A stretch of DNA of 64,000 nucleotides from Zygnema circumcarinatum SAG 698-1b. Lineage: Eukaryota > Plantae > Zygnematophyceae. The notes beneath the pieces were generated by a model that was given only the letters and a program-made list of their open reading frames with translations, did not search any database and was not told where the DNA came from. Location of the stretch: positions 1,026,880 to 1,090,879 of the forward strand of contig CM074810.1 in the NCBI GenBank assembly GCA_037447605.1, in the 5' to 3' direction. The position numbers and the translations under genes are program-made. Positions 8,150-46,115 of the stretch are shown piece by piece (position 1 is the stretch's first letter; each line of letters begins with the position of its first letter).

Positions 8150-8202
8150 CCAATGAGGGGATGCCACGTTAAATATTGGGATACGTGGCATGTTTCGATT
8201 GG
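8150..8202. promoter_or_regulatory. Inverted pair of CCAAT-N9-CCACG (ERSE-type) elements upstream of TMEM14/FAX
   Basis: CCAAT-gaggggatg-CCACG (8150-8168) and CGTGG-catgtttcg-ATTGG (8184-8202). Confidence 0.7.
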
Positions 8203-8362
8203 TTTACGTGAAGGAGGGCTCCCTGAAAGGCGTACCACCCTCCCTCCCCGTGCTCTGGGCATAGAGTGGGAGGGCAGCAAGTGCTTGAGAGGGAGGGAAG
8301 GGAGAGAGGGAGAGAGGGAGGGAGGGAGGGAGGGAGGGAGGGAGGAGAAAGGGGCTGCCGCC

Positions 8363-9696
8363 ATGCACGACTTCTGCCTGACCTTCCCCTTCGCGGCGCT
8401 GCTGCTGCTGGGCGGGGCGGCGGGCTATGTTCGCCGCGGCAGCGTGCATTCCCTGGCCATGGCAACCGCCTGCTCGCTCATCCTCTCTTTCGCGGGGTAC
8501 AGCCAGCTGTCGGCTTTTAAGACCGGCGGCAACAGTGTACTGGCGATGCTGCTGCAGCTAGGTAGGTCGAATTTATGGCATTCTTCTCACGCAGTTCTTG
8601 CTCCGCCAGCAATTAAAAAAAAATATTGTATTTTATTCTTCATTGAAAATTCTTTTGTATGGGACATTCACAATGTACAGGAGCCCTTTTTTTTTCCGCC
8701 TTGGACATACATGACCTATAGGTCAGACACGTAGTGTTAATTAAAACATGGCGCGTTTGCGAAGTTACGATGACCCCTTTTTTTTTTTCCAATTTATGAT
8801 TTTATTTCTCTGACAATTTGCCCCTGCCTTACCTCTCGCTAGTGCTTGCTCTGGCCTTTCATCCTCCTCTATAGTCACGTACCTGTGCACCCATATCTAA
8901 CAAAGCATCTGATGCATTCATTGTTTTTACTTTTTATACTTGCGTGCCGTTGGTCGTCTGACGTCTTTGCTATATGCTGAAGTGAAGCTGCAACCTAAGC
9001 AATTGCCTTACATTGTTCAAGATTGTCAGTGTGTGACTTTAGGAGGTGTGCGATTTTATTTTTTTGGATTAGCTCTGCTTGTTTGGCAAAGATGTTTGTG
9101 ACCGTTTCTGCGGAATTGAAAGGAACTCGAGTACAGAATAGTCTGTCTCAATCATATTCGGTTGTGTTGGTGCAGCCATCTCAATTTCTCTAGCAGTGGT
9201 GCTTGGCCAGCGATACGCAGAAACAGGGAAATTGATGCCGGCTGGTATAGTGGCAGTGCTAAGGTGGGCCTCTACTTCATGGCATTGGACGTGAATGCAG
9301 TCTTTGTGCGTTTACCTTTATGACAGTGCAAGTTTAATTTGGTTCCTGTAAACATTGTATGCGTGCGGAGTCTAATGTGTGTAGTTATAGAAATGAAGCA
9401 GCAAAGTTTATTGCTATTAAAACCTCCAGAGCAAGTATCTTGCTGTACAAATGAATAGAGTGCTAGGTGTCACAGACAAAGGTTGAGACATAGAGTTGAT
9501 TCTTGATGCTTCTTAGTTGAGTGCGATGAGAGAGGGTTCAAACGTTGCTTGAAGCCAATTGGAGCTAAATCTCAAGATTGGATGCTGATGAATAGAAGCG
9601 CTTCATCGGGAGTGCAGTGCCCTTATGGCTCTCTTCTATGCCTACAAGCTGCTTCGGGGGGGAAACATTATCTCGAAGAAGGTCAGCAGTGACTGA
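8363..9696 (+). CDS. TMEM14 family / fatty acid export protein (FAX5/FAX6-like), 3 exons
   Basis: MHDFCLTFPFAALLLLGGAAGYVRRGS...LQL / AISISLAVVLGQRYAETGKLMPAGIVAVL / SALMALFYAYKLLRGGNIISKKVSSD*. The MHDFC and K.MPAG motifs are diagnostic. Confidence 0.93.
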
Positions 9697-11313
9697 GGTA
9701 TGAACATCCAACTGTTGGTGTTTGTAGACTACCGCAGAGTTTGCACTGGCTCCGTATCCAACGCATGGCTATTCTCTCATCATCCAAATGTCCCATCAAG
9801 TCTGTCTTATTTGTCAGTGAAGGAACTTCGCTTTCTGCTGAGTATGACAGCAGTGAGTGCAATTAACATTTGTGACTGGGAGCACTCAAATATGAAAGCG
9901 CAACATATCAGTTTAGCTTACACAGCTATTAATACATGACAAGCTAAACCTTTGGGAGGATTTGAGAGCTGGCCCTTAAGCCTCCCCTTCATGGCCATTT
10001 CTAGTCAGAGTTTGTTCCACGAGTCGCATTGCCTTGCAGATGAGCTGATGGGAGAGGGGCTGAGGGAGGCTTGGATTGCAGGCGCTACAAGGATCCCTTG
10101 CGTACAAAGCCGGCGCTCGTATTGGAAGATTCCTCGTATTGAACTATGAGGAACCATGCTCCACTTCTTGTCGATTTTCTTTTTTTCCTTTTTCCGTATC
10201 TTCATCGTATTGCTATTCTTCTGCTTTGTACATGAACACTCTCGACTGAGCAGTTCACTATTGAAATCTTCGCAAAGGACACGCATGGGCTGAGGCCCAC
10301 AGAAGGTGATTTTCCTTTTTTTCGCATTAATGGCATAGATAAGAGTTATTTTCCATTTTTAGAGCCAACTCCTCGTTACTAAAAATAAAGGCTACCACGT
10401 GCTGGGCACGTGAGGTACGTCCGAGATCAGTCGAAACAATCAGGAAAGCTCTATAGACAAGCCCTAGGGCAAAAACAAGAAATAGCTGTATCAAGCTCGA
10501 GCCTTTCTCAATGTGTAACTGCAACCTCGAACTTAAGTGGTTCAACAGTGATGTACTGCTGAAATCAGTGACTGAATGGACTTGCGGCTTCATTTGTTGC
10601 TACAAGAAACCAGACATTCAAGTTATCAAGTTAAGCCCTATGTTGAGTACGATAAACCACTCCACCATTGTAAGGAACTTTGCCTCTTCAACTCAGTGTT
10701 TTCCATCAGTCAGCTAATGAGGGGGGGGGGGGGGAGGGAGGGGGAGGGGTCCTGGGCTTAGCTAGCTTCGGGGGGTCATCCATACTTCCAAGTATGAAGA
10801 ACGCTACATGTTAATCCGAACTTGAACCTTTCAAAAATGAGAATTTGAGACTTTCAACAAGGACAGCCTGCCTAACTAAAACCTACTCAATATGGGGTTC
10901 TCTAACAATACAAAGTGATTCCAAAGCGTCAATGCCTTCCCTATGGAACAAAGGTAATCATCAGGTCAAAATGCCACATACATGATATGAAACCAGCTGC
11001 TTGGCAGCACGTGATCGGCTGATCTCTCCCCTTGAGACATCAGCGGTGATGCCCATCTCAGGCCAGTTGAAACTCCCTTCGTGTGATGACAGTGAACCAG
11101 GGCTTCATGACTGGTGCCTCCTGGTGCAGCCCATGCTGGCCACTCCTCCCCTTTTTTGACAAGGCTCTCCTTGCTGCTTTTCAGCACCATTAAATTCGTT
11201 ATTGAAGGTAGGGAGTCACATCCAATTCCTTTGAAGAATCGTCCCCATCCTAAGTGATAGTCAGGTTCAGTCTCTGGTAACTTCGGTATTAAGGGCTGTA
11301 CAATGCACCTGTA

Positions 11314-12293
11314 TCATTCGTGCGAGTTCAAATCTGCTCCCTCATTGCTCACTGTCCCAGTCAACGGAGGAACGTCATTGCCATCGTTTGCGAGATTCCC
11401 ATCTCCGCCCTCTTCCACCATGCCATCTTCTGCTTCTCCCCCTTCGATTATGGTGTTTACCTCGTCTGCATCTTCTGGAACTTCTACTTCCTCAGCCTCG
11501 TCTGCATGCCTGCCTTCATCGCTTGCAGTATGCTCAACTTCTGCAGCTATGGCCACTGAAGCGTGTCCCTCAGCATCGATATCGGCCTTCCTCTTCTTTC
11601 CCTCTGACCGAGTCTTGGCCTCCGACTTCTTTGTGCGGCTTTCCCGGCGATGTGCTGCATCCAAACGACAGTGGAAGCACAGCACAGCAGATTGGGGAAC
11701 ATAAACAAAGGAACCAACAATTTTTTTCCAGCTCTCCTCCAGTTCCTGGAGATGAAATGGTGAAAAACTGCAATTCTCATCAGAATTATGCGAATAAGTT
11801 GCCGTGCTACTCGTACCTTCTAAGGCTGCCTCTAGAGGAGGCACAAACTCTCCAAAGCCGAGGTCCTTCACTGCTGTCAGAATATCCGCCGCACTAATCG
11901 TCTGGCGCTTGCCTTCATGGCACACCTCGTTGGCTCTGCCAAAGTTCCCAGAGCAAAAAGTTTTCAGAAAGATTCACCACCTCCTCACCCCTTGTGCATC
12001 TCCTTCTCCAGCTATGGCCCTGCCGTGCCATCCACCCTCCTCCCACTCCTCTCGTTGCATCCCATCCCATACTTTGCACCTGCATCTTGTCAACTCTACC
12101 AGCATGTTTTGGATAAGTGAGGCCCCTCTCACGCGGCAGCAAGGTAATGGATGAAGATCTTGGCTCCCTCCGCCAGAGCGACAAGCGCATCCTTATTGAC
12201 CTGCACGTCTCGCAGTCCACTGCTCTGCAGCAGCGTGGCTCTCACAATCCTCCTCACGATTGTGCGTGGAAGCTCCTCCGCCTCAGACGCCAT
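11314..12293 (-). CDS. POLE3: Histone-fold protein, DNA polymerase epsilon subunit 3 / DPB4 / CHRAC17 (NF-YB11-like), 3 exons, acidic tail
   Basis: MASEAEELPRTIVRRIV...VNKDALVALAEGAKIFIHYLAA / ANEVCHEGKRQTISAADILTAVKDLGFGEFVPPLEAALE / D/E-rich C-terminus. Confidence 0.88.
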
Positions 12294-45500: not shown

Positions 45501-45656
45501 CCATTTTTTCCTGCACAAACAGCAGCAGAGCCATGGCAGAAGCAGGAGTGGACACGTGGCGCCCACCTGGTTCCCGAAGCTGACCCACGCGCCATAGCTG
45601 AAGACGGACACCTTGAGCCCGGTCTTCCCAAGCGAGCGGTACTGCATGGTCACCAT
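42538..45656 (-). CDS. KAB1: Voltage-gated K+ channel beta subunit (aldo-keto reductase AKR6), 7 exons
   Basis: [27 protein letters not shown] / [29 protein letters not shown] / [22 protein letters not shown] / [21 protein letters not shown] / [17 protein letters not shown] / [23 protein letters not shown] / [19 protein letters not shown]. Start is at 45656 or 45647. Confidence 0.96.
42798..42845 (+). repeat. Perfect (TTAGGG)8 interstitial telomere-type array in KAB1 intron 6
   Basis: Eight exact hexamers counted. Confidence 0.95.
43124..43243. repeat. 12-bp tandem repeat (GCGTTGGGACAA) x~10 in KAB1 intron 5
   Basis: Read directly. Confidence 0.95.
43436..43560. repeat. (CT)n microsatellite in KAB1 intron 4
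   Basis: Read directly. Confidence 0.95.
44397..44487. repeat. 30-bp perfect tandem repeat x3 in KAB1 intron 2
   Basis: GAAAATTGAAACCCATGCTTGTTTGCCAGT x3. Confidence 0.95.
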
Positions 45657-45729
45657 GGCTCCTCTCCTTCAAGGTAGGAACAAGCTCTCTTTCTCTCTCT
45701 CTCTCTCTCTCCCTCTCTCTCTCACACAC

Positions 45730-46000
45730 ACTCTCTCTCGATATTCTCAGGACACACTCACTCTCTCTCTCCCACTCTCTCTCCCTCTCGATATTCTCAG
45801 GACGCTCTCTCTCCCCTCCCTCTCGCTCTCCCACTCTCGATATTCTCAGGACGCTCTCTCTCCTCCCACTCTCTCTCTCCCACTCTCGATATTCTCAGGA
45901 CTCGCTCTCCTCCCTCTCTCTCTCTCCCACTCGATATTCTCAGGACGCTCTCTCCTCCCTCTCTCTCCCACTCGATATTCCCAGGACGCTCTCTCACTCT
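45730..46000. repeat. ~47 bp minisatellite x6 (core CTCGATATTCTCAGGAC) upstream of the KAB1 ATG
   Basis: Core at 45737, 45787, 45836, 45885, 45930 and 45971. Confidence 0.9.
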
Positions 46001-46061
46001 CTCCACGCTTCACAGACCTGTTGGGAGGCACAGTGCCTACTGTGCACCTCGAGTCGATTAG

Positions 46062-46115
46062 CCAGTCAGAGTCTGCCACGTCATTGCATATGACCACGTG
46101 GTGCACCATCATTGG
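46062..46115. promoter_or_regulatory. Inverted ERSE-type pair upstream of KAB1
   Basis: CCAGT-cagagtctg-CCACG (46062-46080) and CGTGG-tgcaccatc-ATTGG (46097-46115). Confidence 0.65.

Follow-up and report, generated by a model that had tools for sequence, protein, structure and literature searches.

Facing pairs of ERSE-type CCAAT-N9-CCACG sites in gene spacers of Zygnema circumcarinatum: a candidate promoter module

Introduction

Few cis-regulatory grammars are common to animals and plants, and the pairing of NF-Y with a bZIP or bHLH protein at a fixed distance of 9-10 bp is among them. The ER stress element (ERSE; CCAAT-N9-CCACG) is bound by NF-Y together with ATF6 or bZIP28 (PMC5499772, PMC3645738). 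In human cells NF-Y also pairs with USF/MAX, with the E-box 10-12 bp from the CCAAT box, and does so in LTR elements as well (PMC4889920, PMC12065363). Double-CCAAT arrangements with E-boxes in between have been reported in mammals (PMC4889920, PMC12065363). Here, we describe a unit of 53-54 bp in which two ERSE-type half-sites face each other, and which occurs four times in one 64 kb stretch of Z. circumcarinatum DNA (the window). If this lineage uses such a symmetric unit at high density, the pairing would have to be seen as an architectural device of general use, older and broader than the ER-stress response.

Results

Sequence and copies of the dyad

Direct reading at all four loci marked by a first-pass annotation of the window gave the consensus CCAAT-N9-CCACG-N15/16-CGTGG-N9-ATTGG. 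The four dyads, the N9 spacing, the two half-sites with one mismatch and the two single half-sites reported there were all confirmed, and a motif scan added a further single half-site:

8150-8202, dyad 1, exact, centre N15
22699-22752, dyad 2, exact, centre N16
41008-41061, dyad 3, centre N16, one mismatch (CCGCG for CCACG)
46062-46115, dyad 4, centre N16, one mismatch (CCAGT for CCAAT, on the gene-proximal side)
40785-40804, + strand, single half-site, exact CCAAT-N9-CCACGT
22119-22137, + strand, single half-site, one mismatch (CCACC)
42702, further single half-site, one mismatch

Within a dyad the ACGT cores are 17-18 bp and the CCAAT boxes 48-49 bp apart.

Exact half-sites were counted on both strands of the window, with 7 observed compared to 0.06 +/- 0.24 expected from 100 dinucleotide shuffles. 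In the histogram of half-site spacings from N0 to N30, these seven fell at N9 and none was detected at N0-N8 or N10-N17, which is the strictly fixed spacing of ERSE-I. The enrichment at N9 over other spacings, put up for checking in the first-pass annotation, was thereby borne out within the window for spacings up to N17. All occurrences of CCAAT-N11-ACGT in the window read CCACGT. Dyads were found four times against 0.00 expected, and the N16 form with up to three mismatches allowed was found three times against 0.00 in the shuffles. A scan of facing, tandem and back-to-back arrangements with centre spacings of 0-40 led to the four facing dyads only, with centres of 15 or 16.

Conservation of motif letters and flanks

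The dyads at 8150 and 46062 have nothing in common with each other or with the repeated unit that carries the other two (see below), except for the motif and GA/CT low complexity. As the dyads at 22699 and 41008 count as one unit, the sample from the window comprises three independent sequence contexts. Between these two repeat-borne copies 1 of 20 motif letters but 11 of 34 spacer letters had changed (Fisher p = 0.02). It is thus the motif and its spacing that are conserved and not the surroundings, as had been proposed.

The conserved part consists of the motif letters and short flanks (R-CCAAT-S-R and YG-CCACGT). The CCAAT box was preceded by G or A in 9/9 sites and followed by S and R at positions +1 and +2 in 8/9; R-CCAAT-S-R is the known flank preference of NF-Y. 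In 8/9 sites CCACGT was preceded by YG, so that the inner box reads as the ABRE/G-box half GCCACGT.

The arms of dyad 2 are 86% complementary over 22 nt and fold well (z = -6), and no palindromy beyond the motif was found in the dyads. Folding of dyad 4 as a hairpin was no better than that of shuffles (z = -1.75), which rules out a conserved DNA hairpin as the basis of the dyad.

Genes beside the dyads

All four dyads lie in 5' intergenic spacers between tandem genes. Three neighbouring genes were identified, and the earlier placement of dyads 5' of TMEM14/FAX, KAB1 and PKD2 held when these were positioned by Pfam match and ATG, by the end of mRNA coverage and by ATG, respectively:

8363-8557, + strand, first coding exon of a TMEM14-family (TMEM14/FAX-like) gene, with a TMEM14 Pfam match and the ATG at 8363
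24373-39824, - strand, PKD2-type channel gene, with the ATG at 39824-39822
42760-46011, - strand, KAB1-like aldo-keto reductase gene, with spliced exons in RNA contigs

From the end of dyad 1 to the TMEM14 ATG there are 160 bp, and the dyad lies in a spacer that comes after an HR-lesion-like gene (+ strand). For dyad 4, the mRNA contigs of the KAB1-like gene showed GT-AG introns on the minus strand and a depth of 110-270 up to the bin 45811-46011, in which the high-depth coverage ends, 50-250 bp from the dyad. Because the RNA contigs break in a CT-rich tandem repeat, the 5' end could be anywhere from about 45830 to 46011; this is the only one of the four dyad genes with a bracketed, if rough, transcription start site (TSS). 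Across dyad 4 itself, run X20 had a depth of 0 and the remaining three had 30-43, and a low-depth contig (45834-46365) spans the dyad in three runs; this contig may represent library DNA, a minor start further upstream or read-through from the TPR gene. The transcript of the TPR gene, which is the upstream neighbour, stops at 46434-46697, and dyad 4 lies downstream of this 3' end.

The PKD2 ATG is preceded by a (TCTCCC)n tract of 485 bp on the sense strand. Further upstream, G-box/ABRE-like and CCAAT words cluster within 240 bp (40680-40920), and the single half-site at 40785 is inside this cluster. Dyad 3 follows past both, 1184 bp upstream of the ATG and about 0.5-1.2 kb from the PKD2 start. 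A proximal position (~50-250 bp from the TSS) may thus apply to dyad 4, judged by the end of its high-depth coverage; dyad 1 is close to its ATG and dyad 3, at 1.2 kb from the ATG, is not proximal. Dyad 2 is flanked by the 3' end of PKD2 (~24.4 kb) on one side and by promoter-like sequence (21.8-22.7 kb) on the other, upstream of a putative fourth gene. Most promoters in the window have no dyad, including that of the TPR gene among those seen.

The assembly has four gaps in the window:

7342-7351, assembly gap
31748-31757, assembly gap
35488-35497, assembly gap
37315-37324, assembly gap

None of them is inside or adjoining a motif copy, and the last three fall in the body of the PKD2 gene, where the nearest dyad is over 3.6 kb away. 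The finding of the dyads is independent of continuity across the gaps.

A repeated unit carries two of the dyads

Dyads 2 and 3 are part of a unit present in two copies in the window, and dyads 1 and 4 are in unique DNA:

22673-23266, + strand, copy A: in this order, 26 bp, dyad 2, unique sequence of ~110 bp and a CT-rich microsatellite
40982-41550, + strand, copy B, carrying dyad 3

The copies are 75-77% identical overall and about 86% over the unique part of ~190 bp. The first-pass annotation had suggested a transposable element that distributes the module. The two dyads inside a repeated unit fit this suggestion, but the unit showed neither terminal repeats nor a target duplication nor coding capacity, and may for this reason equally be a local duplication. 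Of the suggested carriage by a transposon, only a two-copy repeat is seen.

Discussion

From the pattern, its statistics, the motif-limited conservation and the position relative to genes, we lean towards regarding the dyad as a selected, promoter-proximal cis-regulatory module that would consist of two mirror-image copies of one composite site. Judged by its letters, an NF-Y trimer most likely occupies the outer CCAAT box of each half, with its histone-fold pair covering the unconstrained spacer of 9 bp, and an ACGT-core bZIP protein of the G-box/ABRE type would bind the inner YG-CCACGT. This class of bZIP proteins includes bZIP28/60, GBF and ABF/HY5-like proteins. Given the distances between the cores and between the CCAAT boxes, there would be room for up to four factor complexes on about 54 bp, and owing to its symmetry the module would work alike for genes on either strand. 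Situated in short spacers between tandem genes and near the start of the downstream gene, it would most likely contribute in a general way to opening and activating promoters without a TATA box, and it probably has no role as an ER-stress switch. The gene-proximal box of dyad 4 reads CCAGT, to which NF-Y should not bind, and the inner box of dyad 3 reads CCGCG; both count against this model. The non-proximal position of dyad 3, the low-depth contig across dyad 4, the dyad-free majority of promoters and a sample of one 64 kb window with three independent contexts weigh against it too.

We tentatively put forward a wider form of this model: a large share of the alga's genes may rely on the mirror-image 'double ERSE' of fixed 54 bp as their general promoter organiser, neutral as to strand, with two NF-Y trimers flanking two G-box bZIP dimers, selection acting on about 24 letters and occasional copying by small repeats. 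In this case a lineage-specific promoter grammar would have arisen from an ancient NF-Y/bZIP pairing that is elsewhere reserved for stress genes. With its many copies and randomised spacers, the module would then be a natural system in which to learn how symmetry and spacing are read. It would also supply promoter building in streptophyte algae with a defined part of 54 bp and make a clean case for asking whether small repeats spread ready-made promoter modules.

We consider it rather unlikely that a functional promoter module is read by other proteins, either by NF-Y with a bHLH/USF-like G-box factor or by a single lineage-specific factor or oligomer on the whole palindrome. CCAAT-N10-CACGTG is the exact mammalian NF-Y/USF arrangement (PMC4889920), the spacing of 10-12 bp is present in all halves and the strict centre of 15/16 bp suggests contacts between the inner factors or one tetramer. 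However, the full CACGTG is present in only 4/8 dyad halves, and the others keep CCACGT, a typical bZIP half-site preference, which favours recognition of this kind over a strict bHLH E-box; the CCAAT flanks also match the preference of NF-Y.

A true ER-stress element, that is, a regulon of the unfolded protein response (UPR) driven by a bZIP28/bZIP60 orthologue and NF-Y, appears improbable. The half-site agrees letter for letter with the ERSE-I consensus including the required N9 (PMC5499772, PMC3645738), and of the three identified neighbours TMEM14 and PKD2 are membrane proteins. No chaperone, PDI, calnexin or ERAD gene is among these neighbours, though, in a window where a minority of the ORFs could be assigned, and the KAB1-like protein, an aldo-keto reductase, is soluble, so specificity for ER stress is unsupported. 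Four dyads and a single half-site in 64 kb would moreover imply thousands genome-wide, which is far above known UPR regulons and too dense for a small stress regulon, and NF-Y uses the same geometry with non-stress partners in mammals (USF/MAX; PMC4889920). Of the NF-Y/bZIP site of ER-stress type that had been proposed, the geometry and the NF-Y- and ABRE/G-box-compatible flanks are supported, and the link to ER stress is not.

Similarly small is the probability we give to passive repeat DNA, a short stretch of mobile or duplicated sequence of foldback, MITE or SINE-like type which happened to land near genes and has no role for the host. It would account for the two dyads in one unit, whose start is 26 bp ahead of the dyad and whose far end is a CT microsatellite, and for the well-folding palindrome with 22-nt arms at 22699. 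Yet dyads 1 and 4 show no flank similarity to this unit, no terminal inverted repeat beyond the motif was found in it, and 4/4 copies are in 5' intergenic spacers. In descendants of one element, neutral decay should also strike motif and spacers alike, whereas 76 of 80 defining letters are intact over the four dyads and the spacers are randomised, in line with the unequal changes in the repeat pair.

Chance or a composition artefact, for which nothing but the small sample speaks, is refuted by the shuffle counts and by the rarity of the strict dyad pattern elsewhere, with one match in 596 Gb of prokaryotic genomes (an intergenic palindrome in a bacterium of 66% GC) and zero in JGI metagenome contigs.

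Comparison with known systems

Dispersal of factor-binding sites by transposable elements, such as that of NF-Y sites in LTR12, resembles the present case in that two dyads are in a repeated unit. It differs in that the window holds just two copies of this repeat, which lacks the hallmarks of a transposon, and in that dyads 1 and 4 are part of unique DNA. ERSE-II (ATTGG-N-CCACG) combines an inverted CCAAT box with CCACG as the dyad does (PMC3645738). It is, however, a single unit with a spacing of 1 bp, whereas the dyad pairs two full ERSE-I units, with 9 bp separating every ATTGG from the CGTGG that belongs to it.

The stereo-aligned NF-Y/USF (MAX) module of mammals shares with the dyad the distance from CCAAT to the CACG(TG) core and is likewise partly carried by repeats (LTR12/MLT1). 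The partner of NF-Y in that module is a bHLH-Zip protein that needs CACGTG, which only half of the boxes in the dyads of this plant lineage contain, and the mammalian double CCAAT is not described as a fixed mirror-image unit of 54 bp (PMC4889920, PMC12065363).

ERSE-I and the plant pERSE (CCAAT-N10-CACG), sites of NF-Y with ATF6/XBP1 or bZIP28, have the letters and the fixed spacing of the dyad half-sites; by sequence, the CCAAT flanks of the dyad fit NF-Y and its inner box is an ACGT-core bZIP site. A literature search found no description of a facing double ERSE. Known ERSEs are single or tandem, reside in promoters of chaperone genes and respond to ER stress. In the dyad, by contrast, a pair of copies stands in facing orientation with a fixed centre of 15/16 bp, beside ordinary genes and at high density.

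Occurrence and sequence of the dyads

Direct reading of the sequence bore out the four dyads of facing half-sites described by the first-pass annotation (CCAAT-N9-CCACG, with CCAAT as outer and CCACG as inner box), including their two mismatches, as well as its single half-sites at 40785 and 22119; another single half-site was found at 42702.

8150-8202, dyad 1: CCAAT-gaggggatg-CCACG-N15-CGTGG-catgtttcg-ATTGG
22699-22752, dyad 2: pattern of dyad 1, with an N16 centre
41008-41061, dyad 3: N16 centre, left inner box CCGCG
46062-46115, dyad 4: N16 centre, left outer box CCAGT
40785, single half-site: exact
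22119, single half-site: inner box CCACC
42702, single half-site: one mismatch

Exact CCAAT-N9-CCACG occurred seven times on both strands of the window, compared with 0.06 copies expected from dinucleotide shuffles, and a histogram of CCAAT-CCACG spacings from N0 to N30 placed seven pairs at N9, with every other spacing between N0 and N17 empty. Similarly, all seven CCAAT-N11-ACGT sites in the window read CCACGT. Three N16 dyads with up to three mismatches were observed (0.00 in shuffles of the window), and a scan of half-site pairs with centres of 0-40 detected four dyads in the window, all facing and with centres of 15 or 16 only, and no tandem or back-to-back pairs. A strict dyad pattern of 22 specified letters had no match among the JGI metagenome contigs and a single match across 596 Gb of prokaryotic genomes, located in a bacterial intergenic region with 66% GC (Acetobacteraceae MAG contig DATHNI010000189.1, 1512-1564), where the palindrome is flanked by two divergent ORFs; this match, unrelated to the algal dyad, may be a chance palindrome or a bacterial operator. 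A chance origin of the dyads is ruled out by the shuffles and the scans of public collections, and the observation is confirmed as highly non-random. It is also independent of the four assembly gaps (7342-7351, 31748-31757, 35488-35497 and 37315-37324), none of which touches a motif copy and three of which lie within the PKD2 gene body.

Alignment of the nine best half-sites led to the consensus R-CCAAT-S-R-N5-Y-G-CCACGT. The flanks found around CCAAT (R-CCAAT-S-R) are those preferred in the NF-Y matrix, and GCCACGT is an ABRE/G-box half-site. Otherwise, spacers, flanks and the 13/14 bp centre are unrelated among the dyads at 8150, at 46062 and the 22699/41008 pair, and no third common motif was detected in the centre, where only 'atatgacc' is common to dyads 2 and 4. 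As the spacers at 8150 and 46062 are unrelated, motif and spacing appear to have been conserved and not merely duplicated, in agreement with the earlier claim. Complementarity of the dyad arms stops at the motif plus one to three adjacent letters; single-strand folding gave a motif-only hairpin in three dyads, and dyad 4 folded no better than shuffles. A foldback or hairpin extending beyond the dyad was rejected on these grounds, and for the same reasons the kept feature is a series of letters, putatively read by proteins, at set intervals and is neither a DNA structure nor a repeat consensus.

Repeated unit and microsatellite tracts

Dyads 2 and 3 belong to one duplicated unit (copy A, 22673-23266; copy B, 40982-41550), which begins 26 bp before the dyad, extends about 110 bp beyond it and terminates with a CT microsatellite, with about 86% identity between the copies across the unique part. 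Between these two dyads, 1 of the 20 defining letters differs, compared with 11 of 34 other letters (Fisher p = 0.02). The transposable element proposed earlier is so far a two-copy unit devoid of transposon hallmarks, and transposon spread of the dyad is unproven. Unrelated to this unit is a dispersed repeat of about 370 bp (2861-3233 and 38859-39220, 86-93% identical), the second copy of which falls within PKD2, in the 5' portion of the gene. Rfam revealed no RNA family at the dyads, its sole match in the window being a solitary full-length 5S rRNA gene (4108-4226, minus strand, 94 bits). The 64 kb further contain 34 strict polypurine/polypyrimidine microsatellite tracts, some of them very long (e.g. 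39823-40307, 22837-24087, 26062-26755 and 33000-33826). A fixed association of dyads with GA/CT tracts is weak, given distances of 77-260 bp to the nearest strict tract and the 16% of the window that lies less than 150 bp from one.

Gene context

The gene map agrees with the claim that dyads lie upstream of TMEM14, KAB1-like and PKD2 genes:

Dyad 1: after an HR-lesion-like gene (plus strand) and before the TMEM14 gene, with its ATG at 8363, 160 bp beyond the dyad
Dyad 2: after the PKD2 3' end, in repeat copy A, with a promoter-like stretch at 21.8-22.7 kb
Dyad 3: after the KAB1-like 3' end, in repeat copy B, followed by a G-box/CCAAT cluster, a CT tract (39823-40307, 485 bp) and the directly abutting PKD2 ATG (39824)
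Dyad 4: after the TPR gene and before the KAB1-like aldo-keto reductase gene (Pfam), both on the minus strand

On this map, each of the four dyads occupies an intergenic spacer in a tandem gene arrangement and lies 5' of the gene that follows; for the gene beyond the promoter-like stretch at 21.8-22.7 kb, no identity was found. The cluster upstream of PKD2 (40680-40920, 240 bp) is separate from dyad 3 and dense in G-box/ABRE words (CCACGTGGC, three GCCACGT and CCACGTGG), with three CCAAT boxes and the single half-site at 40785. As homologues of the TPR gene are land-plant proteins (top match 46% identity), the genome is, by sequence similarity, of plant lineage. The 14 kb TPR-gene contig of a distant relative contained an isolated N9 ERSE but lacked the dyad and is uninformative on conservation, and the relative's transcripts (L002-L007) contained neither ERSE nor dyad. 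A homologue search with TMEM14 exon 1 gave no matches, and the 545 aa ORF of the window had no record in the contig index. On the minus strand at 11854-11973, an exon fragment matched the final third of PF00808, the histone-fold domain of CBF/NF-Y, with an E-value of 0.005 that does not reach the curated cut-off, and may derive from an NF-YB/Dr1/POLE3-type gene.

Transcription at the KAB1-like promoter

Logan contigs from four RNA runs covered the promoter side of the KAB1-like gene. Splicing of the minus-strand mRNA removes introns 43825/43968, 44132/44702 and 44881/45563, and its depth is 110-270 as far as bin 45811-46011. As the high depth stops there, the main start probably falls 50-250 bp from dyad 4, on its downstream side; this start could not be placed more finely because the contigs break in a 49 bp CT-rich tandem repeat (45703-46014, about six copies), which forms the 5' untranslated region. 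The broken contigs run on into different sequences, and similar repeats are therefore present elsewhere in the transcriptome. One run (X20) had a depth of 0 across 46012-46614, and the other three gave a single contig (45834-46365, depth 30-43); introns in these three runs had a depth of 9-20. Transcription of the TPR gene stops at 46434-46697, and the faint RNA over dyad 4 may reflect read-through from this gene. A bidirectional promoter is not supported, since the gene across from each of dyads 1, 3 and 4 is arranged in tandem and has its end, not its start, there, and the ORF opposite the KAB1-like gene at dyad 4 (46062-46526, plus strand) showed no family match and no RNA in X20. Within the minus-strand KAB1-like gene, a 12 bp tandem repeat (TTGGGACAAGCG, 11 copies, 94% matches) at 43116-43251 shares an open frame with an exon segment and, if translated, would give (NACP)n; a TC repeat lies at 43436-43540 in this gene region.

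Comparison with known composite sites

The first-pass annotation had described the dyad elements as ERSE-type. No link to ER stress was found: the genes beside the dyads are ordinary, and the dyads are too dense to mark a small regulon, so that ER-stress specificity is unproven. As CCAGT in dyad 4 and CCGCG in dyad 3 affect letters expected to matter, some halves may be inactive. The literature search retrieved no paper on ERSE with 'inverted repeat', with a relevant use of 'palindromic' or with streptophyte algae.

In the ERSE, NF-Y on CCAAT is followed at a fixed 9 bp by CCACG, bound by ATF6/XBP1 in mammals or bZIP28 in Arabidopsis (PMC5499772, PMC3645738), and the dyad half-site is identical to it. 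The same CCAAT-to-CACGTG geometry is found in human promoters and LTR elements, where NF-Y acts with USF/MAX on CACGTG 10-12 bp from CCAAT (PMC4889920, PMC12065363). Because both geometries match, each half would be occupied by NF-Y and an ACGT-core bZIP, and the dyad by two such pairs facing one another; we infer both factor binding and the effect of the dyad. The strict 15/16 centre suggests that the inner factors may be in contact. Being symmetric, the unit would be indifferent to gene strand, which fits its neighbours on both strands (TMEM14 on plus, KAB1-like and PKD2 on minus). The dyad is best interpreted as a novel symmetric form of the established NF-Y/bZIP composite site and a putative promoter module.
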